A stretch of DNA of 64,000 nt from Oculina patagonica (Eukaryota), in NCBI RefSeq assembly GCF_052425735.1, contig NC_135768.1, forward strand, positions 62,001 to 126,000, written 5' to 3'. Position numbers and translations under genes: made by a program. A model generated the notes under the pieces. The model was not told the origin of the DNA. It did not search any database and worked only from the letters and a program-made list of their open reading frames with translations. Shown here one piece after another: positions 4,845 to 46,363 of this stretch. Every line of letters begins with the position of its first letter. The first letter of the stretch is position 1.

Positions 4845-6364
4845 TTAGTTTTGATCGTCCACATAAAGTCTAACAAGTTGTTTTGATGCACTTGGTAAAT
4901 GAGTAACTGGGCAGCAGCCATGTTGATTGAGGTATTTGTAGATACAAGGGTAACAGAACACATAACCAGATGAAGCCAGTGCTGTAGGATTAGTACGAAC
5001 TTTCTTACACAGAGGACATTGTGCTGGGTGTGGAGGAAGTTGAGCTCCATGCTGGGCAGGCTGTGGAAAGAGAACATAGAAGTTTAATTTCCTTTCCAGT
5101 TTAACCATCACTCAGATCATGAACACTGATAAATTATTCACATTAACCAGTGAAAGATTGCTATAAGCGTGCACATATTTTGCATGTCTGCTTTTAAATG
5201 AACAGATGTCTGTCGTCATCATTCACATCCATGACAACTTGCCCGGATTATCCAGGAGTCTCCCAGATACAGGCCAAATCTCCCTGTCTACTGTATGGGT
5301 CACCAAACCTCCCAGATATGAAGGAAAGTGAAATAAATGACTTCACATTTATTTTGGGAGAAAACTTAAAAATATTTATAGCACTTTTGTGGATGACTCA
5401 GTGGATATTTTTTTTAATGCCGTTTTGGGGGTTGAGAAGAGGTATCTTTACGCAACATTGGTGGTCTCCCAGATTCCTTCTCTGGGTGGAGGAGGGCAAA
5501 TTACTCCAATGCATATCTCACCTTGGGCTGGGGTGGTGGAGGAGGGACTGGTAACTGCATCACAGACTGCACTGCACCTTTATTATCACTTGAATACCAC
5601 CAATCTATGAACTTGAGAAAGAACACTACCACAGGAAGACCATTGGCTAAAAGTGATGTTAATAACTGCATTACTGAACTTGGAATTGCAGCCATCCTTT
5701 GAGCCACAGTCTTCCCACTCAATATACTGAGCAGACTGTTGTGCATGCTGTGCGCAAGAATGTCTTGTCTAGTGAGCCTTTGCAGTGAGACTCCAATGAC
5801 ATGCAGGAGAGGAGAATGGACTCCAGAGAATCTGAAGACATATAGTAGGTGGTAGCATAAGAAGATCGTTTCCCAAGTGAAATGTAAGAATGGATAAACA
5901 TAAATAAATGTCCTCTTCAGGTGAAGAAAGTACGACCGCTTTCGTGAAGAGTTAGTGAACAAATATCCACTCACATACTCCTCCCTCACTCTTTCAAACA
6001 GTTGATCAAGTTTGAGTTTTGCGTATGGTATTCCTACAAGCATTATTAAAGACAAGTACTTCTGAAAGCTTGGAAACTCTCCTTTTCTGTTTACTCTTTT
6101 GAGACCATAAAAATGTTCAGAGATTGAACCCCCGAAGTTCTTCAAGTAATAATTCTGAACAATGTAATCCAGACATAGGTGAAGTTCGTCTCCGAAACGC
6201 CAAATCCATCCCCATCTATCAGGATTGGAAGTTGCTAGCACTTTTAAGGCATAAGAAACAGCCGGTCTAAGAACTGAAGCCATAGATTCCTCGGCAACTA
6301 TCTCGAATATCGTAGGGTTGGCATTTGTAGTCCCTTGGTTCAAATGAGCTGCAAACTCCGCCAT
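4845..6364 (-). CDS. PEX12: Peroxisome assembly protein 12 (RING E3), 2 exons: 6364-5522, 5060-4845
   Basis: MAEFAAHL...PTIFEIVAEESM, GGSISEHFYGLKR, VFFLKFIDWWYS, LPVPPPP, degenerate RING CPLCKKVRTNPTALASSGYVFCYPCIYKYLNQHGCCPVT; phase-0 GT-AG intron 5521-5061. Confidence 0.95.
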
Positions 6365-6456
6365 TTTGAATTTGCTGGGTAACCAGGTGATTTGACAAGC
6401 GTGGTTACAAATGCACAGAGTAACCATTTTGTTGACAGCTTTGTAGAGATGAGACG
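6365..6456. promoter_or_regulatory. Compact bidirectional promoter/5' UTR region between PEX12 and RJL
   Basis: Divergent ATGs at 6364 (-) and 6457 (+); X-box-like GTAACCAGGTGAT at 6379-6391. Confidence 0.55.
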
Positions 6457-9400
6457 ATGGACAGAAAACCCGGACATTTGACAAAGTCTGTTCAAGAGAT
6501 CGCTGGATCTTTGTTCTGGATAAAGGTAAAGATCAAAATGGCCTCAGTTGTACTTTCAAGTGATGGTGGTGTTGTTCCATTTGTTGATAATCCTGGGAAA
6601 TGTATCTCGATCATTTTACATGTACTCTGGCTCAGATGTTTATTTATTTTTGTAAATTTTAATGCTTAACTTTCTTTCCAGGTTGTTGGAATAGGGAACG
6701 ATGGTGTAGGAAAGACCTGTCTTGTTAAAAACTTTTGTGAGAAAAAGGTATGGCAGTGACTGTATTTTACTGTCTAAACATCTCCCTTGGTGATCAGATC
6801 TTTACTTAAGCTTATGTACCAGTCAAATCGAAGGTTCAACATCCCCCCCCCCCCGGCAACACCCTGGGCATTTGAATTTTTGAAAAATTTGTGTTCAAAT
6901 TTCCCCCTCCCCGGGCCAAAAAGCCATTCAAATGCCCCACCATAGTTCTATTTCAGGTCATTAAAAATGCCTTTTTTCCAAGAATTAATTCACACGCCAA
7001 GTCTGCAGATAAGTCTAAAATACAGGAAAAAGCCTTTGTAACCCTTCTCTTTTTATCCAAGTTGTTGCATTCTTTTAAATCCTTAAACTCGCCATTTTGG
7101 ACCTTATTTCGGTCTCCGCCATGCCCCGGGGGGGGGGGGGGGAGGGGCACTCAAAAAAGTTTTATACGGGGAGGCTCCGCCCCAAGCTCTTACCCCTTAC
7201 CCTTTTATATACCATTTTCACAGAAATTGTACCCCTTTTGTATACCTGTTTTCACTCACTGGGATGTATAGCACAAAATCCTGGTTGTAGAGATCAAATT
7301 CCCTACCCCATATGCATTGTGATCAAATTCCCCACCCCAAGGGATGGCAAAGGCGTCAAATGCCCGGGGTATGCCCGGGGAGGGGGGGGGGGGTGTTGAA
7401 CCTTCGATTTGACTGATACATAAATCATGACTGTGTGTTCATTATTAATTAGGAGAATTAAGACATTCAATGATCACTGTTATGTTCTCTTTTCAGTTTT
7501 CAAAAAGCTACCACCCCACTGTAGGAGTAGATTATGGTAGGTTCAGTTCTTTTACAAGTAAGCTTATAAACATGGCCCTAACTTCGAAACCTCACAATTT
7601 TTTTTTGGCATCAGCTCAAATTCACTGTTTTCCTCCAGTATCCAAGAAAAAAAGAAATGTCCAATAAATTATGTAAAAAAAATAACTTACCCCAAGATCA
7701 ATCCTGTCTGAGAAATGCTACTCAGTCCTTCTCATTTCAGCATGTCCATATTAGCTTGCTGTTCATCGTTATTGCAAGTGCAACATTATCTTTTTCCTAA
7801 TTGTTGCTGTCTATTGCTTTCAGGTTTCAAGTTACACAAAATTAATGGCACTGACTGTAAGTATAAATTTTAAATGATGTTGGTAAACAAACCGAATCAC
7901 GTTTATGCACAGAAGAGAACCTTATGAATTAATTCATGGTTGGTGCACCTATACTACATAATTATGTTCCATCAGTTCCATGCCATATAACAATAATTAT
8001 TAATATTCAAAAATTTAATATTCAATACAAGTCCTCAAAATCCATCGAGTTTGATTCTCTCAATTTTGATGAAAAGTTGAAACTTTGTAATACATGTAAG
8101 TCATGATAGTAATAAAATAATTTATTGTTTTATTTTTAGATAGGATAAACTTCTGGGATTTTGGTGGTCATGCAGGTTATGATGAGATAAGGGTTGAACT
8201 ATATGGACAGACACAGGTTAGAGTGCAGCTTGACTTCAGGATTTTACTTCTCGCTCCCAAAGGTGTCCATGGTAAAAATTGAAAGTTAAATTAATTCAGA
8301 AACTTTTAAGGTGGCTCATGAACAATGGTTTAGTAAGATCTTCCCAACTTCAGCTTCCGGGCTAGATCAAGGTGATGTCAGTTTGTTACTATGACAATAC
8401 CAGGTTTATGGTGCCCTCTATCTTTTGAGTATAATATTAAAAACTGCACCACTATCCAGTTAAAGCTTTTTTTCTTTGATAAATATTTCTTTAATCAACA
8501 AAATGAATTTTTACAGGTTTTAAAAATAAGCCCTACCTAACAACAACAACAACAACAACAATATTTGAATGTTTAACATGGTCTGTACCAATGCTTAGTT
8601 TAAAAAGCAAGTTTATAGGCATGCCACAATTTTAATTATTTATTAATCATGATATATTGTGTTACTTAACCAGGCCTGCATTCTGGTGTTTGATGTTACA
8701 AACAAGTTGTCATTTGACTCCCTTGACTACTGGTTACAAGAATTTACTAGTAATGGCGGCAAACAAGCTGTAATGGCTGTGGTCGCTAATAAGGTGAGAA
8801 TCATTCATTTAGCTGTATAATAAACTAAAAAAGATTTTTGCTCTTCTGTTAGGCATTTAGTAGTATAACATTTAGTTAGTATGCTGTGGTGGAAGGTGAG
8901 GTGGCCTAATGGTTAGTGCACTGGACCCAGCCCTGGCCGGGGTTATTGTGTCTTGTTCTTGGGCAAGACACTACTATCACACTGCCTCTCTCTACCCAGG
9001 TGTATAGATGGGCTCTGCCCGAAACGTCTGTTTAATATTAATTTTTTGACACTTAAAAGAGTTTTTTCTCAAATTTCTTTACTATGATCCAAAGTGTCAC
9101 GCATCACTGACTGTTTATTTCATTCTATGGAAGAACAGTTTGTTAGGCAACCATCTTAAAATTCATACATGGGACCTGACCAATAATACTAAATAATTCC
9201 TTTGACTGAGCTACGATTGCAATTATGGAACTGGAATCTTTTGGTGTCAACACTGCAATGTTTAAATCCTCCAGTGTACTTAATTGCAGTTTCATTTTAT
9301 TTTTCATTGGGTCAGACTGACTTGTCTTCCAAAAGAGTTATTAGCAGCAAAGATGGACAGAGATGGGCCAAGGCACATGATCTGAGGTCTGTATGAAAGT

Positions 9401-23632: not shown

Positions 23633-26101
23633 TGTCCTGACCGTGTCCTGCGCACTGTCGAGCCTCCTCTGCACAGGGGCCTGGAGAACAAGAGACTGGG
23701 GAGGAAGGGAGAGACAATTTGGTTCTCATTCCAACTAAAAAGTGTCGGCTACGAATTTCAATATGAAATGATTTTTTATGTTCGCGCAAAGAAAAAAGCC
23801 GTAATGTTACGATGCCCTATTCGCGCTGTGGTCCATTCGTCCATGTTCCACGTGAACTGTTTTCACGTCATTCATATTTTCGAGTAATAGTTTAGATATT
23901 GATGCAGGATAGATTTTTTTCAATAAGTTGTTTTCTCTGTCCATTTTGTTGTATCATTCAAACATTTTCATCCCATGCAGAAATCGAAGGAACGTTCCCT
24001 TGCTTGCACCTTGTACATGCAGTTATGATGCGTTTAAGCACCTACCAAGGTGCTAATTAAGTGATAATCTTATGCAAACAGATGAAATAAATCATACAGT
24101 GTGAACGTACTGCAATATAATTTAGCAGTTACAAGAGAAAAACACACAAAAGGGTTTGGGGCTTCAGTGGGACTCCGACCCAGGACCCTCGCGATATCAG
24201 TTCCATTTATTAAAGAGCCCCTCCCAGGGGGGGGGCCATAAAATAATTGGTAACATGGAAACAAAAAGGAAAATAAAACTGTAACATGGTAAAAACGCTG
24301 TCTTTCTGATATTTTGGGGGGAACAAGGGAATATGGACCAGCCTTCCCTCCCAGGGAGGAGTTCATGTACCCGGGGTCCAATCTCATCTCTTGAGCCTGG
24401 CGTTTTTGGTCAACGGTGATCAAATTCTTAAACAGTTTTGGAACAAAAAAGTCCATAGCCTCAGGCTTGTTTGTCGCTCATGGGTTGCCTGGGACCAGCC
24501 ACTGACCAAACCAAACAGCCTGTCTCTTTCGCGCCGTACCGTGCGTGATCTTCATCAGACTAAAACAACCGCACGCTTCCTGAATCACTCTACCGGGACA
24601 GCGGTACCACTTTGACATGTGACGTATGCACTTGAATAGGTTACGTGAATCCTTGTTATTATTGGTCCTTTGTTTATCACAAGCTTATTTTTCCGTTTTA
24701 TGGATATTCTCTCAAGATTTACCACTAAAAAGGAAAGTTCTGGGCTACTGCTTAAAGGAAAGGCAAATAATACCCTCTTTGAGAACTTTGCCTACGTATT
24801 GAGTGCACTGGCGCGACACATGAGCAATGTTTATCGGCAGGCTTTTATGTAACAGAACAGTTTAGAATCGTCTATATTGTTATACATGTCAAGCCGCTTT
24901 GATCACCTTCTTTGAACACATTCGGCCATAACGCCTGACCAATATACAATGTTGGTTTCTCAGCTCCGACAGAAAAAAACAAAGACACAGACTGTAAGGA
25001 TAAAATACTTTAAAGTTTCATAGACCTGTTTTTGAGTGGAATGTCAACTTCTAAGGAGCTGTGATATTTGTAAATAAAAAGGCCGACGACTTTGCTCTTA
25101 TCGACATGTTCTTGACCTTTGTTTGCGGAAGGCAAGAGGGAGCTCTCATAGCAGAAGTGTTGCTCTGCTCATTGCTATTTTGAGACATTTTTTTTTTTGT
25201 TAAACCGAAAGACTAACATTACCAAAACAAGCGGCTCTGGAAGCAACCAGGAAAATATATCACATTGATGAGTCGAAATCCTTTTATAGGAAAAGTTCGA
25301 TTTTATTTTTACTCATTTACTTTCCGCTAGTGACCAACTCATAATTTCTCCTTACTACACGCCATACAGTAACAAGCTCACAGGTGAACAAGATCGCAGA
25401 ACTAAAAAAGCTACCAACCGAGAAATATGTCTGTAGTTTTTTTTTTAAAAAAAAAGACACCGAAGTCTAACGTAAGAGTAAACAATCGCGCAGTTAAAAC
25501 AACTGATTTTTTAACATTAAGCTTGGTGCTGATTTTAGGCGTGTTCAGCAACAATATAACAAAGCATTTAATGTGGGTTGTGTATTGTTTGTCTGTTGAA
25601 TCATGTGCTTGCACACTTGTGACCCTCTCAAGAGTTTGACGGTGCGTCAAAACTGATAATTAGCATGTGAAAAGTCCTGAGGTGTTAACGAAAGGTAATT
25701 ATCCCTGCTGGAGCCCTTTCATATAGTGTGAAAACTGTACAGTCTTTAGCTCAGGTGTGTTATTGGACTTCCCTCAGGGATAATTTAAGTGTAATTAATC
25801 ATTGAGTCTCGTGACACATGTACTGCTTGATATTTTGCGACAAGCCAGGCGATATATCACACTGTCAACCCACGGATTCCTTAGACAAGATTTAGCCATG
25901 AAGCGGGGTAAGATTTGTTTTGTATCCTAAAAACAAATATGTCTCTGAGCTTTAGGCGATTCTGTGACTTTCATATTAGTGACATGAGCATTGTTTATCA
26001 AGACAAGCCATCGTTTGACATGTTAAGTCAAGTTATTCAGAAATGTTATAGTGACAAGGAATGACTTTGTTTTGTTTTGTTTTTTCTTTTTTTTTACTCA
26101 G

Positions 26102-29087
26102 AGTACACTGTTGTTCAGCCAGATGACGACTCTGGGTTTCAAGATGACTCGAGCGCCGCATTTAGCGAGGAAAGCGATTACTCAGAGCAGATGCCGACCG
26201 CACACAAAACCAAATCCTGGAGCTGTTTTAAGTCGAGAACACAGAGCATCAAACTCAAGAAACAACAGGAAAGTTATGGCACTTCTGGCTGGCCACAAAA
26301 AGAAAACTTCCTTCAAAAGGCGACCAGAAAGATATTTGGAAAGACCAAACAAATATTTGCCGGGAGAAAGCAGGGAGGCGAGAAAAAAGCTACTTCCCCA
26401 AAGCCTGAAGTGAAGTTGAAAGAAAATCACACAGAACAAGTGAATATCATCATTCCAGCAGAAAGCTACACCAGTGTCTACGAGGAACCAGCGTACGATG
26501 ACAGGACAACTTTCGTTCGGGCCGATCAGATGCGATGCTCTATTCGGGAATCCCGTGGCATGGACCCGCGGGAAGCCTTGCAGGTTCGCAAAAGGCAGAC
26601 CATGCTCCGCGTCTTGTTTGACTTCCAAGCGTGTGATGATGATGATATTTCCGTGGTGAGAGGAGAGTTGATCAAGGTACTCAGCAAGGATGATAATGAT
26701 TGGTGGTGGGTGGAGAATGTACATCGGGAACAAGGATTTGTACCGCGTAATTTCCTGTGGCCTTGTGGCTGTTACGGTAAGTAAATAACTTCGTTAGATA
26801 ATTCGACTTTTTCAATTGCTTTACTAAGCTTCGAGAAAAATAGGACATCACATCTTAAGACACGTTCGATGCACTTTCAATAGCTTAATAAAATTGTTGT
26901 TAGAGGCTCGAACTAAGCGATGTATATATCGAACGTCCGCGATTTGACAGTTTTATTAAGTTATTTTTCTAACAACCGCGATTTAGTTCGTTTTATAAAG
27001 CTATTTTAAGTGCGTCGAACTCGTCTAACAGGCGTGAAGTCTTATTCTTCTCGTTGTTCTAACAAATTCTTGGCTTCAGCGATTAAAATTTCTCAGAAAA
27101 AATTACATAGATTAAATACGCCTTTTCAGCATCAGTTCAGCACAGGCTGACAGAATACCTTGTATATTTTCAATTCAGTCGTGTATCATTGTACATTTTA
27201 ATGAGTTGTATATACACCAAGAGCACCAGTCTATAATATAACCATGCAATATAGCAATGTTCTTAAATTCCTAAGCGATTTAGTGGTGATATGAAATTGG
27301 CATTTTAAAATCGTTGGCAAAAAAGGCCAGACTTTAACAAAACACAATTGGTTGGCGCAGGTTGTTTATCAACAAAACATCTTCTAAAGTATATAGCTCT
27401 CGTTAAAAATGATAAAGCCATGAACTAGCCTGTTATATGTTTTTTAGCCGCGGGTTAAACATTTTGTGAATCTTTCTCGCAAGCTCATTTCGTTTGGTCT
27501 GCAGAACTTTGTAGTCAGAATAGAGAGTTTGTAACTGCTGTGAAGTCTAGCTAACTGTGGTATAGCTGGGCAGCTGGAGTTAAGACAAGTCTGAGATAAA
27601 CTATCAAAGGAACGAGCAGCGAGCTTCCTTTGTTTGAGTTGCTCGGTTTTCAATGAAAGGAATCTTGCTTTATCAAAAAGTCAGTCTAGCTGAACATCTC
27701 AGCGATACACTTAAGATAACAGGCTAATTAACTTCAAAAGGCAATATCACTATAGTATTGTTTAGAAAAGCAAGTTTTACAAGAGACACAGAAGATGAAT
27801 CAGCGGAAATATAATATGAACTGTGGTTAGAGTGGCTTACAGACCGTGAAATTTCTCCTCCATTTACTTTCTGCGCTAAGCAACACGACAAACAAATAAT
27901 TTATAGCGTCCTTTATAAGCACAATACCAAAACAATTTTTTTTTGATAACAACTAAACGTCTGTTTTATGACCTTTATCTTAATCTCACTTTCAGAAATT
28001 CCATTAACGTATCAATGGTAAAGAATACTGAGCTAGCATCCTTTTTCACCATTAATGGTTGATATTGCAAGATTGAAGAATAATGACCGAGCCGGTTCAT
28101 AAAATGAAGGAGCACATTTGTAACATAATTTAGACGAAGACGTTCAACACATACTCTGAATTAACCTTAGTGAATGGATAAGTCTAAAACTTATAACTGT
28201 ATTCTTCAAGGGGGTTTATGTAAGATGTACACATGAAATGATTGCAGAGAAATTTCGATGCTGGTTTCAGGATTTAAATACGTGGCGATACACACAGAGC
28301 ACAGAGAATCATTCTCAATAATATGAAGCTGATATTGCATTTGGGATCATTTTCAGGATATTTGGGATCATTTTCAGGATTCTTTTCACGCATCACGTAC
28401 ACACTGGTCTTGTATTGCCCACAGCTATTAACGTAAAAATGTTTTTACGTTTTCGCATCTCAGTGTCCAAAATAATATAGTAGTTGATCGCATTTACTGA
28501 GGGTCCCCCCCTCCCCCTTGAATTATACAAAGGGAATCGAAACCCTACCCCTCCGCTGAAAAACGTTCAGAGTAAATGTTTGCCACCAGTTGAATAGACT
28601 GTGCCTCTCCGCCCCTCACCCCCTCGCGCCTCCCGTTTTGCGCTGGCGTCCAGTTCTCTCGCCGTTCTTTCCCCGCGCTCATCGATCGGAAAATTACGAA
28701 AAAATAGGGGGCTGTAAACAATCTACCAGTTGCATGTTTTGCTGTACTTGCTACCGGTCACCGATTCCCTTACTTGCCTGTTCACGTTTTCAGCTTTAAG
28801 TTGTAATTGTCTCTTTAGTTTTACTATACTGAAACATTAGAAAAGTACTTCGATTTATTAACCTTTCTTACGAAACCGCCTAACTACTTCATTTCCTCTC
28901 CACAGTGTGTCAAAAGTTTATATTGGAGAAAGTTTCTAATGTGGGCCCAGTCCTCCACGACCAGCATTACATGGAACAAGAAAGAAGCCAATCAAAGAGG
29001 GAATTTGCTGAAGAGGAGGAGTTATACAGCTTTGATGAGAGAACAAGACTCGTGGGGAACAAAAGATATGTTAGCACTTGGTGCTAA
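26102..29087 (+). CDS. Uncharacterised SH3-domain protein; exons 26102-26776 and 28906-29087, first exon not identified
   Basis: SH3 RVLFDFQACDDDDISVVRGELIKVLSKDDNDWWWVENVHREQGFVPRNFL; phase-1 GT-AG join ...WPCGCYVCQKF...YVSTWC*. Confidence 0.8.
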
Positions 29088-30717: not shown

Positions 30718-33700
30718 ATGTCTAAAGGGCCAGCAGTTGGTATCGATCTCGGTACCACCTATTCCTGTGTTGGAGTTTTTCAACATGGGAAAGTGGAAAT
30801 TATCGCGAACGACCAGGGAAATCGAACAACTCCGAGCTATGTCGCTTTTACAGACACTGAGCGGCTGATTGGTGATGCAGCTAAGAATCAAGTGGCTATG
30901 AATCCCAACAACACTGTTTTTGGTAAGTTATACAATCAACTGACGATAGAAGGGATGTTACATTGAAGAGATGCGACTGAATTTTTTTTTTGCTTGCGTT
31001 CGTTTGTAGATGCAAAAAGGTTAATCGGTCGACGTTTTGACGACCCCTCTGTACAAGATGACATGAAACATTGGCCTTTCAAGGTATTTTAAGCGTGTTT
31101 TGGCAAATTGAGGAAGTAATATATTGGAATACCTTAGGCTATTAGATATCAATACAAGTAGCATGTTGTACATTTTCTTATGCTCTGTACATGGTAAGCT
31201 TAATAGTGATGTAAAATTCGATCCATATAGTAAGCAAGTGATTTTACTTTTGACAGATTATCAACGACTCTGGGAGACCAAAAATACGAGTGGAATATAA
31301 AGGAGAAACAAAAACGTTCTACGCAGAAGAGGTATTTAAAAGATTAACTTGAAAATGGTAATCCAGGTGATCAGATATTGTACCAAATATTGTTTACTAA
31401 TGTACATATTTCTCAAAGTACAGAAAAGGACTAGGGTCTAGTTCGTTAAGCTATCAATTGTAGTTTATCAAACATGAGAGGGAGTGTTTCATCACATTTA
31501 CGAACACTGAGAAGGGAGTTGAAAATACAACACACATTATTTTTGATGGACTTCACTGAGGTGTGGGTTTTTTTTTTGGTGTTGGAAATATGTTGTTACA
31601 CTCTCTTGGGAGGCGTGGTGGCCTAATGGTTAGTACGCCGCACTCCGGATCAAGTGATCCGAGTTGGACCCCCAGCCAGGGTCACTGGGTTATGTTCTTG
31701 GGCAAGACACTTTACTCTCATAGTGCCTCTCTCCACCCAGGTGTATAAATGGATACCGGTGAAATAATGCTGGGGGTACCCTGCGATGGACTAGCATCCT
31801 ATTGAGGGGGGAGTAGAAATATTCCTAGCCGCTTAATGCTACGGAAACAAGGATAAGCTCCGGCAGTGTGGGCTGCATGGCTCTTGGCTTCCCTTACTCT
31901 CTTGAGTGTGAAATATATCTTCCCCATTCAAAACTAAAACTTAAACATGCATGTCATTGAGATTGAATCCTGATTTTATTTTGCACTGTTGTCTTGGATT
32001 TTGTTTCTGGTCATTTGTCAAAGTCATAAGTTTTATTATCTTTTCACAGATCTCATCCATGGTGTTGACAAAGATGAAAGAAACAGCTCAGGCTTATCTT
32101 GGCAAAACTATCACAGATGCTGTGGTGACAGTGCCAGCTTATTTTAATGATTCTCAGCGCCAAGCAACCAAAGATGCAGGTAGGGTTCATTGCTGTCAAC
32201 GTATACAAGCAATTATTTGACTTCTATTATGGATCACCTGCCTAGATAAAAACTCTCCCTACAGTTAGCTTTCCTATATTCCACATAATAACCTCTCCCC
32301 TTTTTCATTGTCAGTAAAATCAATATCAAAATGGAAAGAGTGGAACAAAAGTCCAGTGACAAAAGTTGAGCGTCTCAGTGACGATAAATTCAATAAAACA
32401 CTCTAAAATTATGAATAAATAAAAAAAGTCTGTTAATGAAAATCAAACTGGTGAAAAAAATTTCAAACCAAAAGAAAAAAATACATCACAGTAGATTCAT
32501 TCAAACTCTGACCAAAAATAAAATAAATCACTTTGTTTTCTTTTGGATGGCGCATTTAGTTCAAATGTGTATGTGTACATAATGCGAAGCTTAGTTTATT
32601 AGAGGAACACATTTGTGAATATTTTTGGCCCTCGTAGGATATGCTGATTTTGCTCTATATCAACCCAGTTTTAAGCATACTGCACGAGGTCCCTACAATA
32701 AAAGGCGTGGCAAACGTTATTCAAGACGGAGACTCTTCTGAGAGGCTGAGATTTTCTTAGCCTTGCAAAAGAAGTCAAGACTCCAAAGATGACTGCGTGA
32801 AAAAAATTGTGATGGTGAGACCCATGGAATTTGGAAGGATACACATTTTTTAAAGGTCTATTCACAAACCCCATACATGTAATAAATGAAGTTAAAAAAA
32901 TAACTGCAATGTCCTTTTGTTAATAGTATGTACCTAAGGAAACTAAAGGATATGCCGGGGGGGGGGGGGGGGGATCCATGCTTAACAATAGAGGAAAATA
33001 TACTTCACATCATAATTTTTACAATAAAATATTTTCTCTTTTCAAGGTGTGATAGCTGGTCTCAATGTTTTGCGCATTATCAATGAACCAACTGCAGCTG
33101 CTATTGCATATGGTCTTGACAAGAAAGTCGGTGCTGAGCGCAATGTTCTTATCTTTGACCTCGGTGGTGGCACATTTGATGTCTCTATTTTGAGCATTGA
33201 GGAAGGAATCTTTGAAGTGAAGTCCACTGCTGGAAATACTCATCTGGGTGGAGAAGACTTTGACAACAACGTAGTTGACTACTTTGTCGAGGAATTCAGA
33301 AGGAAGTATAAAAAAGATTTGTCAACCAACAAACGTGCATTGCGTCGCCTGAGAACAGCTTGTGAACGTGCAAAAAGAACACTTTCCTCCAGTACCCAAA
33401 CAAGCATTGAGATTGATTCCCTGTATGAGGGGATTGATTTCTACACGTCACTTACCCGTGCCAAGTTTGAGTCCTTAAACAGTGCTTTGTTTGAGAGCAC
33501 CAAGCAGCCAGTTGAGAAGGCACTGCGTGATGCTGGTCTTTCAAAAGGCCAGGTGCATGAGGTTGTGCTGGTTGGAGGATCAACTCGCATCCCAAAGATT
33601 CAGGAGATTCTGCAGAAGTTCTTTGATGGCAAAGAGCTCAACAAGAGCATCAACCCAGATGAAGCCGTGGCATATGGTGCCGCTGTTCAAGCTGCTATTT

Positions 33701-34188
33701 TGAGTGGCGATAGGAGCAGTGAAGTCCAGGACTTACTGCTGCTTGATGTTGCACCATTGTCCCTCGGGATTGAGACTGCAGGAGGTGTCATGACGGTCCT
33801 CATCAAGCGGAACACGACTATACCAACCAAAAAAACTGAATCCTTTACAACTTACTCAGACAATCAGACCAGTGTTCTTATTCAGGTAACCAGACTTAAT
33901 AATCATGATGTAATTTTATATCCTTTAGGTTAATCACAAGAATAATTTCTAATTCCTGGACCAAACATGACCAGTGACCCTGTGCAGTATTGTATCTAAG
34001 GAAAAACTAACCTCAAATTTCCCCAAGGTGAGAATCTGTTTGTGAGGTGGTCCATTCACCTTTAGGTGAAGAAGTTTGCATTTCAGGCTGGCCAGTGTCT
34101 CAGTGTACTTTAATTTTGTGTTCGTGTCTCCATTTACAGGTGTTAAACTTTGCAAAGACAATTTCTGTAAAAAAACGCGCCCCCCCAC

Positions 34189-38643: not shown

Positions 38644-41600
38644 ATGGCAATATTACCTGAGAAATATGCTTGTCTTTTTATTGGTAAGTACTGATTACTT
38701 GAAAGTTGGTTCACGTTGATGTTTTGCGAGCGGCGTCATTTACAGACGATCGCCAAACTCTCGGTTTGTATTGGGTCCGGTATAAATTAAACATTCCGTG
38801 AACTTCAAGCGAACCCAGCGAACTTACGTTAATTCCTCCCTTATAAAGTTTCTCGGTTATTTAGTCATTTGTAAAGAAACACAATGAAGTAATCATCAGT
38901 GTTAAAAGGTTTCCCATAAGAGCGAGTCGCTATGATGTCGAAGATCAAGCTAGATCGCCCTTCTGTATAAATGCTTTCAGCCTTCACAAAGTGCCAGAGC
39001 TCAGATGTATTGTTTAGCCTTGTGTTTAGCAGTGTTCCGCGAGGGCGTTTTCGCTTGAAAGGCTTTATTTTAATGTAACCATCAAGGATTGTGTTAAACT
39101 ATTCCATGAATATTTCGCAGTTGCATACAGATTTTATTTCGAAATCGTAAGTTATCGAGCGAAGCTTGCATGCATAGTGAACTAATTAGAGTGGACGTTG
39201 TTGTACACAATATCGGAGAGAAATTTTGAAGACAATATACTGATATTCTTTTATGTCGACATTTTCTACGTTACAAAAGTTTTAATTCGTCGATCAGTGA
39301 TGGAATTTTGAACCCTGCTTAGCTTTTGGTCAGTTTGTGGTCTAGTTTGTGGCAAGAACAGATCACATGTTGCTATAAAATATTATGTACCTTCTTCCTA
39401 GGGGTGGGGGGGGGGGGGGTGGGGGTACCCAGCGACGGGGATGAATGAATGGGGGCAAGAATCAAGACCCCCCAAAATCCCCAAAGCTTCCAACAAATCT
39501 CAGAAAAATCCAAATTAAAACCCCTTCATGCTGAATTTCTGACCCTTAAATTTCCAGAAATGAGGAATGATATTACTACAGAAAAACACTAGAAATTGAA
39601 TGCTTATGTTTGTTTTTTCATCATACCATATGAATTTATCTTTCCCTTATCTTCTAGTCATTTTAATAATGCTAGAGACATCCAAGAACACCTCTGTTTC
39701 AACAAAAACATTATGGATGACTACTCTAAACAAGACCACTACCACAAATCTTTGACTGTTTTTAATACCCAAAAAATATCCTTACTTAAAACAAGCCACC
39801 CCCAAAGGATCATGTGTACTTACGGCACCCCCGATCGAGTGTCGATCAACACTAGCGATCGACCACGATCGACACTATCATCGACACTCGACCGACCCAC
39901 GCGGCACTCGATCGACACCGATCAACATATCGGTTGACCCGCGATCGACACACAGTTGACAGACTTTCATTTTCTTGACACTCTATCGCGACGAAGCGAC
40001 TACACTCGAGTGTCGAGTCGATCGGTACTTACGGTCGGTGTCGGTAGCGTGTGTCGTCTGTCGGTAGCGTGTCGGTCGTCTGTAGTGTTTCGTTGTTTCG
40101 GTGATCCAGTATCTCCTCAAAAGGGGGTCGATGAGTCGACGGTCGAGAAGCGATGGAGGGCCGTGACGATTTAACTCGGAAAATGGTTTGTCATTTCAGA
40201 GCTTTCGAAAGGCTAATGTTACTAGTTCGCTATGTTCCTGTAATACTAGACTTTCTAAAAGTCGTAGCATGTATTTTTCATCAACGAGGATACCTCCTTA
40301 CATTTCATACATCCTTCTTTCTTTCTTTCCTTCTTCTTTCTTCTTTTTTCTTAAATAAACATGCACCCGTTTTAGTTAAACAAAAACAAAAAAATACTTG
40401 ACCGCCGAACATTGTCGAGAGTTAAAACCTTCACCGATGTCACTTATCTTTTAAAATACTGCTTAAATTTATACAGGAGAGTCAAACTGTGTGTTTCGAT
40501 TAATATAAAATTCGAACTTTGCGACTCGTAAAACAAGACAACATTTGAGCACTTTTTAAGGAAAAACATTTTATAGTACATGAACAACAGCAACTTATTA
40601 TTTTTTATCTGTTTCGATAAATAGTTTGTGGAATGTTGATTATACACAGTAAAAGGTTTATTGCTTGTAAGCTTGTACAACTTAAAATTTAATATATACT
40701 ATTCAAATTTCATTGCTAATTACATTTTAACCCTTTAACTGGCAAATTTTCTCAAAAATGCCGTTTTTTAACCGTTAAATCAGTTTTTTGGTTACCATGC
40801 TCTTACATGTTCTTACATTTGCTGTAAAACCAATTTACTGAGGAGCTAGACTTTCTCAACGTTAAAGTACAAAATGTACACCATTACTCTGACGCATGCG
40901 TATAAGCCACAATTTGGACTTTTTGTTTTTGATTTTCATTTTTTTTCTTCTTGTCTTTTTCCTTTCTTTTTTCTCGTCCCTTTTATTCTCCCTTCCTTTT
41001 GAACTTCATATCCCTGACAGCCTTAAAATTTTGGTTGAAAGGATAATAGGCCATTTCCGAGTTACCCTTTGCCACTGTTTCAAAACGAGTCTAGGCGCGA
41101 AACAAAATAAAAATGAGTTTATTGCATGAAAATGGACCCGGACTCCCCCATGGGTTTTTTTGCGACGCAGTATAACAATTTAAATTTTTGCTCTAACCAG
41201 CATGTCTTGAGAGATTGCCTCTCTTATAAAATACCATCAGAGGCCTTGTGAATTATTTTCACAAGGCGATTTTATTAACTAGTTTCATATTTTAATTGGT
41301 CGCGAACACTGGGTTGTATGTGGTAGTTACAAAAGGCAGTATTTTTTTCTTTTTTTTAATTGTTTGCTGGAGCGCCGATCGACTTCTATTGGCGAAATTG
41401 ACTCCTGTTAGAGACCTCTTTATAAAGTTGTTTGGGTAGCCGCGCGCTTTAGGCGCAATTTGAAGTTAAAGAAGTTATCTTCAAATCTTTTTTTTTTTTT
41501 GAAGAGTTTGTTGCTTCGCCTTTAATAAAAAAATCCTCTTTTAACACCCAGTGGATGAACGTGGTAAAGTGAATTATTGGATTTTTTTCGGCTTATAGTG

Positions 41601-44600
41601 TGTCTTGATGTCAAGGATATATTCTTTTAAATCTATCTCCTTTATAAACTACTGTGTCCAGGATATTAAAAATAAGTTAATTCTTATAATTTTCAGCAGT
41701 AAATTTAATTGTGGGGTGGAGTTTTTGTTGTTTAATAAATTGACAAATGTCTTGTCGTTCATGACCCCAAAGGGATTATACAACGTCAAGTACAACCCGG
41801 TTCAATTGTCCACACTGATCAGTGGGCAGCATATCGCCAGATACAGAGACGACTGTTTACTTCACCGAAAGTCAATCATTCTCTGCATTTTGTTGACCCG
41901 GTCACTGGGGTACATACACAACACGCTGAAAGCAATTTATTGTCCACAGCGAAAGAAAAGTTCAAGAAAATGAAGGGAAATACAAACCCGAACTTTCTGA
42001 TAGAATACCTGCATGAATTTATGTGGAGGAGATGGTATGGCGATCCTCACCCAGATGGATGTTTTCAACGTCTTTTGCAAGATATTGCTGAGCAGAATCC
42101 CCTTTGAAAATAACGCTGACTGCATTCCGATTTAAGATATACCAAGAATCCCAGAAAATTGAATAGGTCTATAATAATTAGCTTAGACTATACTAGTCTT
42201 AGTTGATTTTCATCTTCTGATAGCGCGAGGAAGCTTTAAGTTACAACACACGTTACAAACCTCATTGATCCTTTATCGTTCGATTGATAAGCCGGAGAAA
42301 CCGGTTTCAACAGGTTTCTAAAGTTATGTGTGGTCTTGGGATTATAAACGAGAGTACCCAGGCGATGTTGGAGTTCGATTACATGTGCGACTATAATGCG
42401 TGTTACTAAAAACGGTTTGAAACTGATCAAAAAAATCTAAAAGTTAAAATGATGTTGTAAAAACTTATAAGAAGTTAAATTTTCGAAAAGTCTCTGTTGC
42501 TTTAGTCAGTATTTTTTTTTAAATCAGCCTGAGTTTCAAATTGTTTTAATAAAATGATTAATTTGATCGCCAGATAACACGACGACTCGATTGATTCAGT
42601 ATTTTTCGTCAGATGTTTGGTTCGATTGATTACGCGGGGGGTACTCTATGTCTTGTACGTTGAAAGTATTTTTTTTAACAGCAGCAATTTTCATTTCAAC
42701 GTTGTTCATCAGTTATTCTATTTAACAATTAGACTACGAGCCCAAAAAATTCACCCTTAAAAAAGCAACGCGAGCGCGATTGTTTCTATGTTGTTGCGAT
42801 TGTTTTCTACGTTTTTGTATGTGCGCAGGAAGAAAATCTAGTGGAGAACAAAAAGACAATACAGTGTCTGCCGGAACATCAGTCTGATAGTTGCCCCGGA
42901 TATGTTCTACAGATCCCCGAAGCCGCTCCGGGCAGAGTGCTGCAGATAACCGAAACGTGCCCTCCCTCCCTACTACTGATTCGAAAAAGAAAAAAAAACG
43001 CCTGATCGCAGGTTGGTCAGGAGCTACAGACAAAAAAAAAACAATTTAATGCATTAAGTGGGTTTCTTGTCTGGTTATGTTTATAAGCCCTCCCGGATAT
43101 AAACCCCTCCGCTATATAAGCCCACCCAAAACTCCTTGTATAAGCGCAGGGCATCCGGATTTTACGGTTGAGCTCGACTGCGTGGCGACCGCTATGACGA
43201 TGTATGGATATCAATCGACACCGACCGTGTGTCAGCAGAGCGCGATAGAGATCGACCGAGTATCGGCCGAGTGTCGACCGACTAGGAGGATACTATCGCC
43301 CGACCGAGCGGTCGACACTCGACCGACTATCGCCCGTTGTTGGTCGAGTGTCGATCTAGTACACTGAGAGGTGAGACTGTCGATCGCGGGCGACGCTGTG
43401 TCGATGACCCGTCGGGGGTGCCGTAAGTACACATGATCCCCCCCAAAAATAATGGCAAATTTTCCTCCAGAATAAAAAATTTTGTATTTCAAATATTTTC
43501 ACCAAAGGGGATAGAAAATTAGGTTTTTGTCTTTACTGCTGTCTACTCCTGCATGTTTTGCCATCAGAGTTTTGCTGAAATTTGATGTAGGCACCAGCTC
43601 AGTCAGCAAACTTATGCTCACAAAATGTTGAGGGCTAGCCTCCTACACAGATGTTCTTTTATCTGAGGGCTAACCTGGCATTGGATTGGTAGCACACTCT
43701 GCCAGAGTGTGACTTTACTATATCTCATTATACCTGTTTTTGATCATTATTCCTTTGTCATTTTTACACATTCCTAGTCTAACAATCATTAATATATTTA
43801 ACATCTTCTGTGTTTTTATTTAGATGCAACATTGAAAGACATTCTTACTGCCTTCAGCTATTCAACAACCAGAAACACCTCTCAAGAAAGAAAACTACTT
43901 CAAAGCAAACTTGAGGACTTGTTTGGTGGGTCTGAACAATGGCTTGCTGCTTTTTCAATCCGAACTGCTCTGGACGTCTTTCTGACTGTCATGAACTTTC
44001 CAGCTGGTTCAGAAGTAATTTTCACAGCAATAAATATTCCAGACATGGTGTCAGTAGTGGAAAGTCATGGACTAAAGGTTGTACCTGTTGACCTTGATCT
44101 CGACACGCTTGCACCTAAACCTGAACTTGTTGAACTTGCTGTAACTGACAAGACAGTAGCCATTGTAGCTGCTCACTTGTATGGCAAGTGGATCAATTTG
44201 GACAAAGTGTTCCAAGTAGCACGTGCACATGGGCTGTACGTATTGGAAGACTGTGCTGAATCATTTCAAGGCTTGAAAAGAAAAGGTCACAAACTCTCTG
44301 ACTTGACATTTTTTAGTTTTGGATCGATAAAGTACTATACATCTTTGGGTGGGGCAATGGTTAGAGTTAAGAATCCTGAAATTCTAAAGAAAATGAGAGC
44401 CAAGCTAGAAGAGTTTCCTGTTCAGAATCAATGGACCTACTTCAAGAAACTCACTTGCTATTCTTTGCTTATGATGGCTGGATTTAATAATTTTTTGACA
44501 AACTGGCTGTTTATAAATACTTTTCATCTACTGGGATTCAATTATAAAGAGTATTTCATTTCTCTCCTGCGCGCATTTCCCGGAGGTGTAACTCTTAATA

Positions 44601-46158
44601 AGCTTCGATATCGACCATCAGCCATGCTATTGAGGTTCATGCTCTACCGACTGAGAAGAGTGAGTAGCAAAGACTTCCGCACTGTCAAGTTGAAAGGAGA
44701 CTTTGTGAGCAGAAATCTACCAAGTAATGTGTTTGTTCCTGGCCAAAAAGCAGACATCAAAAGCTATTGGCTCTTTCCTTTGGTAGTGGTGAGTAGTAAT
44801 GGTAGTTGTAAAATTCATTAACTATTCATGAAGGTGCAAACCAATCCCAGCACAGTATTCAGATCACATGTACACAACTGTAAACCACAATACAAATCAA
44901 ACAATAGAATAAACTTTTGATAGGAACTCCTGCTCAGCTAATTAGTATTCATTAACTTTTGATACAGACATCTACCGATTTGCATTTCAATACTTTTCCT
45001 TTAATTTCCTTGTTTTCATTTCACAAGTAAAATAAAATATTTGTGTCCAATCTGTATGGCCGTTTACATTGGCTCGCCTATCGGCTCGCCATTGTAAACA
45101 CCCATACAGATCTCCCGCTTATATTTATCTACTACTAATGAATGACTCTTAAAAAGTTTGAATGTGAATCACTGACATTGATGGATTGACACTTGAAAAG
45201 CCTGTAAATCACTTGACTTAAGCACATGATTTCAGTGTTTTGTTATGTTCTTCTAGTGGGAGACATGCGGCCTAAAATAATATGGTTAGCGAGCTGGACT
45301 CTGGATGGAGCAGTTCAGGTTCAAGCCCTGGCCAGGGTCATTGTGTTGTGTTCTTGAAAAAAAAAAAAACAGTCTTGCACTCAAAATGTCTCCACCCAGG
45401 TGCATACAAATTAGTACATGTGAATTGAATTGTCCCATTCAAATGAAAATGCCAAAGATAAGTTCCATCCTGATCAGCCAGGAGGCTCAAGTGCAAAATT
45501 TTTTGTCTTCACCTTGTGTTCTTCTACCATCCCAATGTGGTTTATTGAACCAACAAAATAGAAATATGTGTGGTATACGGTATCTTTAATCAGTGCTTCA
45601 CCAATTTTTTTTCTCCTGTTACAGGACAACCCAGATGAAGTTGTAAAAGCACTGGAAAAAGAAGGTGTAGAGGCGTACAAAGGAGCAACACAACTTTCCA
45701 CTGTCTTCAGAACAAAGCAGAGTGCAGTAGACCAAGCAGATGAAGCCAAGACGAGGCAGGACATCAAAACAATGGAACCTATTTATTCTACATTGTTGCC
45801 TCAAGCAGAAGTTGGTGCTGCTATGGGAATGTCGTCTTCAGCTGGTGGCACAGCTAAAGCAAGTGGCTCCCCCAAGGCAAGAAATGTAAATGAAACACCA
45901 ACATCTGCAGAGTTCATGTGCTCTCCGCCCATCAGCACAACTGGAACGAATCATGCCTTTAGCAAGGAGAAGGATGACATTCTGTTTCCACACAACGCTA
46001 AATACTTGATAGATCATGTGTTGTATCTTCCTGTTCACAAGAGAGTTTCATTCTGGTATCTTGAACACATCTGTAATGCAGTTGAGAAAGTTATGAAAGA
46101 CAGAGTGGGTGTGAAAATTGCTGATTCCAGGAATGTCTTGTTTCAATCCAAGTTGTAG
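38644..46158 (+). CDS. DegT/DnrJ/EryC1/StrS-family PLP-dependent aminotransferase-like protein, 3 exons (38644-38683, 43824-44788, 45625-46158)
   Basis: In-frame joins MAILPEKYACLFID-ATLKDIL and ...WLFPLVV-DNPDEVV; motifs GSEVIFTAINIPDM, VPVDLD, AIVAAHLYG, VLEDCAES (PLP Asp), FFSFGSIKYYTSLGGA (PLP Lys), YWLFP, VLYLPVH. Confidence 0.88.
41150..41770 (-). mobile_element. Degraded Penelope-like retroelement fragment (end of RT to linker) nested in the Merlin element
   Basis: Frameshifted minus-strand peptides LHPTIKFTAE, LDTVVYKGDRFK, LDIKTHYKP, HPLGVKRGF/IKGEA, FKLRLKARGYPNNFI, ILPFVTTTYNP. Confidence 0.75.
41772..42107 (+). pseudogene. C-terminal half of a Merlin/ISXO2-like DDE transposase
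   Basis: One open frame lacking its start: IIQRQVQPGSIVHTDQWAAYRQI...KVNHSLHFVDPVTGVHTQHAES...KKMKG...EYLHEFMWRRWYG...LLQDIAEQNPL*. Confidence 0.88.
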
Positions 46159-46285
46159 ATTTGAACAGTTATGTACAGTGAAACCCCAATATACAGAAGT
46201 GCCTGCTGGTAAATGTGTTCATTATTAATGACGGTTCTTTTTACTGGGATTTTGTTTTCATACATTTTACGTATTACTGGGAACT

Positions 46286-46304
46286 TTTTATAAGGTTTTT
46301 TTTG

Positions 46305-46358
<54 letters not shown>
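46286..46358 (+). repeat. Long poly(T) tract 3' of the aminotransferase stop
   Basis: Uninterrupted T run from ~46306 to 46358. Confidence 0.9.

Positions 46359-46363
<5 letters not shown>

Follow-up and report, generated by a model that had tools for sequence, protein, structure and literature searches.

The closest described relatives of the coral protein discussed here are the nucleotide-sugar and inosose aminotransferases of the DegT/DnrJ/EryC1 family (Pfam PF01041), such as ArnB, the GDP-perosamine synthase Per, QdtB and BtrR/BtrS. The coral protein resembles them in its fold-type I architecture over the whole chain, with TM scores of 0.73-0.77 by target, and in the presence of the Schiff-base lysine, the PLP-binding aspartate and a serine five residues before the lysine. 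In contrast to them, it has S-[IV]-R in place of the SGT motif, a peroxisomal targeting signal (PTS1), and an insert of about 50 residues and three helices after the lysine, to which anthozoans add a disordered loop of about 70 residues; moreover, the bacterial members of its sub-family are found outside sugar clusters. It is 13-19% identical to each of the DegT enzymes with a solved structure or a Swiss-Prot entry, and the fold nevertheless matches over the full length. Campylobacter jejuni Cj1437 and Bradyrhizobium RtxA are presumably DegT-family proteins as well. Cj1437 and RtxA's N-terminal domain catalyze the PLP- and glutamate-dependent amination of the C2 keto group of dihydroxyacetone phosphate (DHAP) to serinol phosphate (PMC11800397, PMC12096443, PMC3222319). 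This is the reaction type that we propose for the coral enzyme, and the likeness concerns the reaction. Cj1437 and RtxA serve bacterial capsule decoration or phytotoxin synthesis, whereas the pathway proposed for the coral is peroxisomal. A peroxisomal parallel is alanine-glyoxylate aminotransferase (AGXT), a fold-type I PLP enzyme with a C-terminal peroxisomal signal, which removes the carbonyl product of a peroxisomal oxidase. However, AGXT is a class V aminotransferase (PF00266) and thus from another family; the coral protein scores just 13 bits against the PF00266 model. We consider it slightly favored, with a probability of roughly 0.55, that the coral gene is of vertical origin and encodes a peroxisomal aminotransferase that does not act on sugars.

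The gene occupies positions 38644-46158 of the window, the whole 64,000-nucleotide stretch of Oculina patagonica DNA that was analyzed, and it lies on the + strand, as do all its features given below. It has three exons and exclusively GT..AG introns, and its coding sequence of 1539 nt specifies a product of 512 aa with no internal stops. Exon 1 (38644..38683) begins with the ATG, holds 13 codons and 1 nt (MAILPEKYACLFI), and ends in phase 1 at a GTAAGT donor at 38684. Intron 1 (38684..43823) is 5140 nt long and contains dispersed repeats. Exon 2 (43824..44788) encodes the PLP-binding large domain and contains the Pfam PF01041 match. It is followed by intron 2 (44789..45624; 836 nt, phase 0) and by exon 3 (45625..46158), which encodes the C-terminal small domain, the disordered anthozoan-specific insert (about 45724-45960, alignment A1), the PTS1 and the stop codon. 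The model agrees end to end with the transcript-derived proteins P0006, P0010 and P0012 of related corals (78-84% identity in exon 2), the transcripts of which also contain the exon 1/2 junction 'LFI|DA', and with the annotated proteins of Exaiptasia (510 aa) and Nematostella (509 aa). Four public runs, of which one is polyA RNA-seq, yielded contigs from relatives with about 92-95% identity. They start at 43823/4 and join 44787/8 to 45624/5 across the 836-nt GT..AG gap, so that the predicted exon borders are reproduced exactly. Close relatives thus express the gene in spliced form. In the 529-Mb assembly, the gene is present once, and PF01041 occurs at this locus alone. Exon 2 has a dN/dS of 0.058 in comparison with a related coral, and retains all 36 of the 36 residues that are invariant in the sub-family. 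The one copy of the gene is intact and subject to strong purifying selection.

Since the Pfam family is overwhelmingly prokaryotic, and the sub-family has bacterial members with identities of up to 34-39%, recent bacterial horizontal transfer into the coral lineage, or contamination of the assembly, has to be considered as the source of the gene. The surroundings argue against either. The flanking genes (DnaJ/TM2, Pex2/Pex12, SH3 and HSP70) are eukaryotic, and the GC content of the gene is the same as that of the surrounding window. Both introns contain host repeats: the region 41500-43440 of intron 1 recurs, with 84-96% identity, in about 10 or more other places of the genome, and intron 2 harbors a roughly 335-bp element of high copy number (at about 44803-45140), for which a first look found 2468 candidates in the genome and of which 39 other copies, when scored, were 90-92% identical. 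Together with the single copy and the spliced transcripts in relatives, these observations bear out the sequence-only reading in its view that the intact, intron-containing DegT-superfamily gene is not contamination.

The same reading considered the gene either horizontally acquired and domesticated, or patchily retained. Patchy retention stands, but a recent horizontal origin does not. Orthologues are present in at least eight animal phyla (Cnidaria, Mollusca, Annelida, Arthropoda, Echinodermata, Hemichordata, Cephalochordata and Tunicata) and in protists. Those with names come from Exaiptasia, Nematostella, bivalves, gastropods, Octopus, Capitella, Strigamia, Pycnogonum, Acanthaster, Amphiura, Antedon, Saccoglossus, Branchiostoma and Clavelina. 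Among the named hits there is no vertebrate, insect or nematode, in contrast to AGXT, which is universal in animals. Intron 1 (phase 1, '..FI|DA..') is shared in position and phase by the coral, Nematostella, Branchiostoma and Acanthaster, and intron 2 (phase 0, 'LFPxxV|D/E') by the coral, Nematostella and Branchiostoma; the Acanthaster comparison covers the first intron. In the maximum likelihood tree, the nearest relatives of the window protein are cnidarians, namely corals (support 100) and then Actiniaria (98), followed by other eukaryotes. The tree recovers a bilaterian (91), a protostome (95) and a mollusc (93) group, and sets the bacteria apart in a clade of their own (100). An AU test did not reject a tree with the animals forced into one clade (p-AU 0.605), the log-likelihood of which was 5.1 above that of the free tree. 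Hence, the tree and the shared introns agree with vertical inheritance across Metazoa, the outcome that the sequence-only reading had itself named as contrary to its proposal. In view of the orthologue spread, the introns shared with bilaterians, the animal monophyly that stands in the AU test and the dN/dS of about 0.06, the gene has descended vertically since at least the common ancestor of cnidarians and bilaterians, with patchy loss. Recent transfer or contamination is extremely improbable, and transfer on any post-cnidarian timescale is refuted. A much deeper transfer, before Metazoa and in one direction or the other, may have taken place.

The family assignment is clear. Exon 2 matches PF01041 with 106.9 bits (cut-off 19.8, E 1.8e-30), as anticipated from the EDCAES and SFGSIK motifs. 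The aspartate of the former, D156 (44249..44251), which pairs with the PLP pyridine nitrogen, aligns with the 'iedcaqs' motif of BtrR, and the lysine of the latter, K183 (44330..44332), with the BtrR Schiff-base lysine. In the alignment, K183, D156 and S178, the phosphate serine five residues before the lysine, coincide with the catalytic residues in BtrR (2c7t), and they do not vary among 21 eukaryotic and 10 bacterial members. The canonical Ser-Gly-Thr/Ser PLP-phosphate loop is absent: the window protein has S-I-R-T where BtrR has 'sgstal', and the motif is S-[IV]-R-[TS] throughout the sub-family, with an invariant arginine (R60, 43961..43963). R60 and D156 are invariant in alignments A1 and A2, which include the bacterial members. 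The protein does not reach any of the NCBIfam equivalogs ArnB, WecE, RfbH, PseC, LegC and DesI; its best score is 73 bits (ArnB, cut-off 631), and the remaining models give about 49-62 bits against cut-offs of 375-650. Judged by these motifs and scores, the sub-family is a distinct DegT branch that does not come up to any named equivalog, and the replacement of SGT by S-[IV]-R is a new point. In the coral, the gene at this locus is the orthologue that represents an ancient and uncharacterized sub-family of eukaryotic PLP enzymes, DegT-like and of fold type I. The lack of characterized members had been expected, but with a vertebrate framing that does not apply, the host being an anthozoan cnidarian.

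The AlphaFold2 model of the orthologue P0010 (81% identical, pLDDT 80) matches 7b0m, ArnB, Per and QdtB with a Foldseek E of 1e-18 and TM scores of 0.70-0.77 by target, and the DegT fold match extends through residue 487. The predicted fold-type I two-domain architecture is thus superposable on solved DegT members. All closest solved structures are sugar or inosose aminotransferases. A hydrophobic stretch (LTCYSLL...HLLGF, 44450..44539), for which membrane association had been suggested, is part of the three-helix insert of about 50 residues that is typical of the sub-family. In the model, the insert helices span residues 216-234, 237-249 and 254-262 (pLDDT 76-92). The Kyte-Doolittle maximum over 19 residues is 1.0-1.5 (1.01 for the window stretch), and the stretch contains 1-6 charged residues in orthologues. 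With this low hydropathy and these charges, it is not a transmembrane segment. Residues 369-440 of the model, which correspond to the anthozoan loop of about 70 residues in exon 3, have a pLDDT below 50 and are predicted to be disordered.

The protein ends in the tripeptide Ser-Lys-Leu (46147..46155), which reads as a canonical type-1 peroxisomal targeting signal. A strict PTS1, defined as [SAC][KRH][LM] at the C terminus, is present in 24 of the 26 animal orthologues (as -SKL or -AKL), in 4 of the 5 protist orthologues and in 15 of the 18 top-ranked unnamed sequences, but in none of the 65 named bacterial homologues. A literature search found no paper connecting DegT enzymes and peroxisomes. 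The conserved signal, predicted from the protein ends, points to an unstudied amine-forming step in peroxisomes rather than to sugar decoration.

The signal also makes the amino-sugar reading doubtful, according to which the protein would be a cytosolic nucleotide-sugar aminotransferase. Such an enzyme could act, like GDP-perosamine synthase, on GDP-4-keto-6-deoxymannose, the product of animal GMD, and could supply mucus or surface glycans with an amino-sugar not yet described. PF01041 membership fits this function, as do BtrR, ArnB, perosamine synthase and QdtB as top sequence and fold matches, and homologues have been automatically named 'GDPPS-like' or 'perosamine synthetase'. However, the PTS1 is kept across phyla, and nucleotide sugars are not known to be among the peroxisomal metabolites. 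The unreached equivalog models and the replaced SGT loop also disagree with a sugar substrate, and so does the genomic context in bacteria. At 67 bacterial loci, no NDP-sugar dehydratase, epimerase, nucleotidyltransferase or glycosyltransferase is found among the recurrent neighbor families, and these are likewise absent from the 25 commonest families of 53 immediate neighbors, beyond which families with a single occurrence are not listed. The enzymes to which members are fused belong to lipid or glycerol-phosphate metabolism. Altogether, a role in nucleotide-sugar metabolism is unlikely, although one of the bacterial partners, an oxidase of the DprE1 or sugar-lactone-oxidase type, would speak in its favor.

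The fusions and neighbors of bacterial and protist members are diverse; each fusion type rests on 1-3 cluster representatives, and most of the 67 bacterial loci lack a conserved neighbor. Fusions to a GlpD-type glycerol-3-phosphate dehydrogenase are found in P0173 and P0188 (E 2e-75), and fusions to a DprE1/ALO-type FAD oxidase in P0245 (61 cluster members, Acidobacteriota), P0247, P0175 and L082. An oxidase of the latter type is encoded directly upstream in four Planctomycetota loci (L026, L058, L060 and L065), overlapping the start in three and abutting it in one. The aminotransferases of these cassettes (the P0245 cluster and the four loci) belong to the coral sub-family and share all signature motifs, and the pairing with an oxidase implies a sequence from alcohol to carbonyl to amine. 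Unlike the coral protein, the cassettes have no PTS1; they are themselves uncharacterized, and the coral genome contains no close homologue of the partner oxidase. As DprE1/ALO-type oxidases are closest to enzymes that oxidize sugars or polyols, a carbohydrate-like substrate is conceivable. A PlsC acyltransferase is fused in P0169 and encoded by a separate gene immediately upstream in Mariniphaga (L068). P0208 is a fusion with an ACBP, and the fused protein itself ends in -SKL. In a Gemmatimonadota locus (L075), the gene abuts that for an alkyl-DHAP synthase (E 1e-130 to 2uuu), in the vicinity of an acyl-reductase-like gene, a ketoacyl synthase and a GNAT-like gene. However, full-length alkyl-DHAP synthase occurs in just about 5-6 of 50 bacterial genomes with the enzyme, which rules out alkyl-DHAP as the general substrate.

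Peroxiredoxin is fused to the enzyme in Chromera and is a neighbor in three loci, implying a partner that produces H2O2. Like the PTS1, this would also suit a peroxisomal PLP enzyme with another substrate or chemistry. The reaction could be the transamination of 2-oxo acids or aldehydes, assuming peroxisomal D-amino-acid, 2-hydroxy-acid or polyamine oxidases as their source, or of 3-oxoacyl-CoA, in agreement with the ACBP fusion. It could also be that of a decarboxylase or lyase, since related PLP enzymes of the C. jejuni capsule pathway decarboxylate, as in the conversion of serine phosphate to ethanolamine phosphate by Cj1436 (PMC11800397). Such alternatives are possible, but we regard them as rather improbable. 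The GlpD-type and PlsC-type fusions and the alkyl-DHAP synthase neighbor are more specific for glycerol-phosphate chemistry, and transaminases have the same triad of Lys, Asp and Ser that is kept here. In dehydratases of the DegT family, the lysine is replaced.

For the favored non-sugar aminotransferase, the following scheme can be envisaged. Pex5 would import the protein into the peroxisomal matrix by its predicted PTS1, and the enzyme would there convert a carbonyl compound to an amine. The fusions and gene neighbors of bacterial and protist members suggest a keto-phosphate or keto-lipid like DHAP, acyl-DHAP or alkyl-DHAP as the most likely class of substrate, which either an oxidase or the ether-lipid enzymes of the peroxisome would supply. 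The product would have a 2-amino-2-deoxyglycerol (serinol) phosphate backbone, rather than being an NDP-amino-sugar. The assignment of DHAP-type keto-phosphates or lipids as substrates is tentative.

The distribution of the gene in cnidarians, molluscs and oomycetes would also resemble that of ceramide-2-aminoethylphosphonate (AEP) lipids, and there is a PEP-mutase-family gene in the coral genome. Could the protein be the missing AEP transaminase of phosphonolipid-rich invertebrates and oomycetes, which converts phosphonoacetaldehyde to AEP? This is very unlikely, because a separate class V transaminase of the PhnW/AepZ type is already present in the coral genome (three exons with 190, 115 and 99 bits, covering model positions 2-355, cut-off 361), so that there is no gap to fill. 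Moreover, phosphonate genes were not seen beside the bacterial homologues.

A peroxisomal serinol phosphate-forming enzyme could, more speculatively, be part of an undescribed branch of ether-lipid and DHAP metabolism in marine invertebrates and several protists. In this branch, DHAP, acyl-DHAP or alkyl-DHAP would be aminated at C2, and the resulting serinol phosphate backbones would be N-acylated to ceramide-like 'serinol' ether or acyl lipids. If this is true, the serinol-lipid pathway has been lost from vertebrates, insects and nematodes, which would account for its never having been seen in model animals.

The gene at window positions 38644-46158 on the forward strand is an intact three-exon member of the DegT family, just as the sequence-only reading had described it, and the coordinates proved exact. 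Exon 1 (38644-38683, +) and exon 3 (45625-46158, +) were read from the sequence, and exon 2 (43824-44788, +) carries the Pfam DegT_DnrJ_EryC1 match (E 1.8e-30). By direct reading of the region, the donors are of the canonical GTAAGT and GTGAGT types, and both acceptors are pyrimidine-rich and end in AG. The coding sequence of 1539 nt specifies 512 residues. Both active site motifs are present, and in the alignment with the structurally solved enzyme BtrR (2c7t), D156 and K183 fall on its catalytic Asp and Lys. This locus is the only place in the 529-Mb assembly with PF01041. GC content is uniform in the window (~0.33-0.41), and the N count is zero.

The gene model agrees with the annotated proteins of Exaiptasia (510 aa) and Nematostella (509 aa), which are collinear with it from Met1 to the end, both exon junctions included. 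Three full-length proteins of related species, P0006 (495 aa), P0010 (504 aa) and P0012 (498 aa), come from short assembled contigs and are 78-84% identical in exon 2. When contigs from four public sequencing runs, one of them a polyA RNA-seq library, were mapped on 43700-46300, all four linked 44787/8 with 45624/5, leaving out 836 nt bounded by GT..AG. The exon 2 pieces start at 43823 in runs X1, X4 and X15, and at 43840 in X2. Since the contigs are ~92-95% identical to the window, they originate from relatives, and it is in these relatives that the orthologue is transcribed and spliced as modelled. Among public runs, none from this very genome was found. Comparison of exon 2 with a more distant coral (locus L001) gave a dN of 0.073, a dS of 1.27 (saturated) and a dN/dS of 0.058, and the family alignment's 36 invariant residues are all retained. 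The gene is functional.

The neighbouring open reading frames are eukaryotic. Long single-exon frames with domain matches encode DnaJ and TM2 domains (1239-2417, +), an SH3 domain (26077-26784, +) and HSP70 (33049-33933, +). The last of these covers model positions 158-437 only and may be an exon or a fragment. The frame with a Pex2/Pex12 N-terminal domain (5501-6484, -; E 2e-34) is a peroxin gene and lies ~32 kb upstream of the DegT-like gene, a proximity that is probably coincidental.

Dispersed host-genome repeats are found inside both introns. The intron 2 element (44803-45140, ~335 bp) has 2468 first-look candidates genome-wide, with an identity of 90-92% in the 39 other copies that were scored. 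The element's 3' third (query 233-343) also aligns to the opposite strand of these copies (72-79% identity), which implies an internal inverted repeat, so that the element resembles a MITE or SINE. In related corals, RNA and DNA contigs cover it at very high depth. Intron 1 contains a composite repeat (41500-43440) with ~10 or more copies on other contigs at 84-96% identity, and an open reading frame (41940-42107) that ends in EFMWRRWYG, similar to a transposase tail, with no Pfam match. Downstream of the gene, an uninterrupted poly-T of ~60 nt (46300-46360) begins ~150 nt past the stop codon, and contigs of related species have small indels around 46170-46270.

The closest named matches are from sea anemones (53-56% identity); further matches at 81-97% identity evidently come from close relatives. 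Named orthologues are present in bivalves, gastropods, Octopus, Capitella, Strigamia, Pycnogonum, three echinoderm classes, Saccoglossus, Branchiostoma and Clavelina, and, outside animals, in an oomycete, Chromera and other protists. Mapping of proteins onto genomic loci placed intron 1 (phase 1, between FI and DA) at the same position in the coral, Nematostella, Branchiostoma and Acanthaster, and intron 2 (phase 0, after LFPxxV) at the same position in the coral, Nematostella and Branchiostoma. In a maximum likelihood tree of 102 rows, rooted on canonical DegT paralogues of a cyanobacterium, a long and fully supported branch separates the sub-family from canonical DegT proteins. The window sequence clusters with corals (support 100) and then with Actiniaria (98), and a bilaterian group (91) includes protostomes (95) and molluscs (93). 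The bacterial sequences all fall in one clade (100), which is sister to the oomycete group. Holding the 29 animal rows together gave a log-likelihood 5.1 units above that of the free quick search, with a p-AU of 0.605; the intended outgroups L085 and L087, mis-extracted and with branches of 6-9 substitutions per site, were left out of the AU test.

Shared introns and orthologues across phyla thus amount to vertical descent, the pattern that had been named beforehand as refuting a transfer. From the two alternatives offered earlier, patchy retention stands, and horizontal acquisition is contradicted by the introns, the tree and the AU result. Contamination or recent transfer is excluded by the shared introns, the eukaryotic neighbours, the host repeats and the tree. 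The cnidarian-bilaterian ancestor already had the gene, introns included. The named matches include no vertebrate, insect or nematode sequence, which is consistent with loss in those lineages. The earlier framing in terms of vertebrates is inapplicable, because the host is an anthozoan. Far earlier, a transfer may have taken place, in either direction, between bacteria and the first eukaryotes.

The protein ends in -SKL, a canonical signal of type 1 for peroxisomal targeting (PTS1) that had been overlooked. Counting [SAC][KRH][LM] at the C-terminus, the signal is found in 24 of 26 animal orthologues, 4 of 5 named protist sequences and 15 of the 18 best-scoring further representatives. It is present in 2 of 70 lower-ranked representatives and in none of 65 named bacterial homologues. 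Conservation for more than 600 million years argues that the signal is in use, and from it we infer that the enzyme is peroxisomal. A literature search identified no publication linking DegT enzymes with peroxisomes, with Nematostella or horizontal gene transfer, or with animals. That a DegT-type enzyme bears a conserved PTS1 in most invertebrate phyla is an unreported property.

With respect to enzyme type, the coral enzyme is none of the named ones: the NCBIfam equivalogs ArnB, WecE, RfbH, PseC, LegC and DesI scored 41-73 bits against cut-offs of 375-650 in the four sequences tested. A profile search yielded 1,204 cluster representatives at E ≤ 1e-30. The sub-family signature consists of LSVR[TS], INIPDM, EDCA[EQ], FSFGxIK, a helical insert and YWLFP. 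In place of the canonical Ser-Gly-Thr loop for the PLP phosphate stands Ser-[Ile/Val]-Arg, whose Arg is invariant (R60 in the coral). In the HMMER alignment, INIPDM takes the position of ltwiata in BtrR, presumably the place of an aromatic residue that stacks on PLP. An AlphaFold model of an 81%-identical orthologue (P0010; pLDDT 80, pTM 0.81) can be overlaid along the whole chain on ArnB, perosamine synthase, QdtB and others, despite an identity of just 13-19%. The hydrophobic stretch, for which membrane association had been suggested, forms three helices in this model (216-262), presumably the sub-family insert. Hydropathy over 19 residues peaks there at 1.0-1.5, and the stretch contains 2-6 charges in orthologues; it is not a membrane span and could serve as a lipid-facing lid. 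Residues 369-440 form a disordered, anthozoan-specific insert. An ESM Atlas search again returned only bacterial DegT clusters. The gene encodes a known kind of enzyme in an uncharacterised variant and is already in databases as 'uncharacterized protein LOC…'.

Bacterial members, which occur in Planctomycetota, Cyanobacteria, Chloroflexota, Acidobacteriota, Proteobacteria and other phyla, are mostly encoded by stand-alone genes. When neighbours within four genes were clustered for 67 loci, no family occurred in more than five, and operon context is therefore anecdotal. Among 53 immediate neighbours, no nucleotide-sugar enzyme is found in the 25 commonest Pfam families, of which peroxiredoxin (three loci) ranks first. 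A role as nucleotide-sugar aminotransferase in an amino-sugar pathway, as first proposed and as family membership would suggest, is improbable: it fits poorly with the PTS1, the SGT loop is lost, bacterial members lack sugar-cluster context, and the fusion partners are of another nature. We put the probability of a peroxisomal aminotransferase acting on something other than NDP-sugars at roughly 0.55-0.6.

Gene fusions are more informative. P0173 and P0188 are fused to a GlpD-type glycerol-3-phosphate dehydrogenase (E 2e-75, nearly the whole model, positions 4-477 of 508). A DprE1/ALO-type FAD oxidase is fused in P0245 (61 members, Acidobacteriota), P0247, P0175 and L082 (7947-10577; Acidobacteriota). 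The same type of oxidase is encoded directly upstream in four Planctomycetota loci, where its gene overlaps the start of the aminotransferase three times and abuts it once. P0169 carries a PlsC-type acyltransferase, and in Mariniphaga a PlsC gene lies directly upstream. P0208 contains an acyl-CoA-binding (ACBP) domain and is probably eukaryotic, since it too ends in -SKL; a Chromera protein is fused to a peroxiredoxin. In a Gemmatimonadota MAG (L075:4818-12270), the aminotransferase closes a run with a ketoacyl synthase, a TPR protein and a GNAT-like gene, and abuts a convergent alkyl-DHAP synthase (AGPS; E 1e-130 to the Dictyostelium enzyme, 2uuu). Ahead of this synthase lies an acyl-reductase-like gene, whose domains are AMP-binding and FAR 'Sterile'. 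This run is a candidate bacterial ether-lipid cluster. A PLD-like neighbour in locus L002 was dropped as a phospholipid synthase, as NCBIfam identifies it as a NucT/ComEA-type nuclease. The P0245 cluster with L082, P0173 and P0188 are widespread bifunctional proteins with wrong automatic names ('decaprenylphospho-beta-D-ribofuranose 2-oxidase', 'perosamine synthetase'), and they would be good targets for finding the family function.

The oxidase and acyltransferase fusions and neighbours suggest a logic of carbonyl, amine and acyl transfer. An oxidase would yield a carbonyl and H2O2, the PLP enzyme would then aminate the carbonyl, and acyl-transfer chemistry would follow, on a scaffold that may be glycerol-phosphate-like. 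The eukaryotic peroxisome houses H2O2-producing oxidases, DHAP acyltransferase and alkyl-DHAP synthase, which fits the PTS1. By reaction only, the scheme can be likened to Cj1437, described in PMC11800397 and PMC12096443 as a PLP transaminase that converts DHAP to serinol phosphate, and to RtxA, which catalyzes the same conversion (PMC3222319). A DHAP-type substrate is a tentative proposal. Its standing is kept low by the few sequences behind each clue, the scarcity of AGPS, the DprE1-like partner, which would also allow a polyol or sugar-like substrate, and the lack of close partner-oxidase homologues in the coral. The fused GlpD-like and DprE1-like domains gave weak matches only, and no close homologue, in the coral genome; the sole long open reading frame matched (L097) is D-2-hydroxyglutarate/D-lactate-dehydrogenase-like, without a PTS1. 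Alkyl-DHAP was rejected as a universal substrate, because, of 50 bacterial genomes carrying the enzyme, only ~5-6 have a full-length AGPS. A different carbonyl substrate in the peroxisome, or a different PLP chemistry, is somewhat less probable than a DHAP-type substrate. Transamination of 2-aminoethylphosphonate (AEP) is very unlikely, as the coral has a separate PhnW/AepZ-type AEP transaminase gene (G000:C13:37041556-37046140, -; three exons, 190, 115 and 99 bits). Together with a PEP-mutase-family gene (G000:C3:15444729-15447032, +), it suggests that the animal makes phosphonates itself.

The inventory of animal peroxisomal enzymes has been drawn largely from mammals, flies and yeast. The gene described here is conserved, under strong constraint, across the majority of invertebrate phyla, from corals through to amphioxus, and is apparently missing from those model organisms. 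It combines a canonical import signal with a type of enzyme known otherwise from sugar and antibiotic pathways of bacteria. It also cautions scans for horizontal transfer: where an animal genome contains a 'bacterial' Pfam family, the gene can be ancient and vertically inherited. If the localisation is true, peroxisomes of most animal phyla would host an undescribed amine-forming reaction. If a DHAP-type substrate is also true, reef-building corals, molluscs and echinoderms would have amino-glycerolipids or serinol metabolites of a new class, and more than 1,200 bacterial protein clusters now mis-named 'perosamine synthetase' or similar would gain a function.
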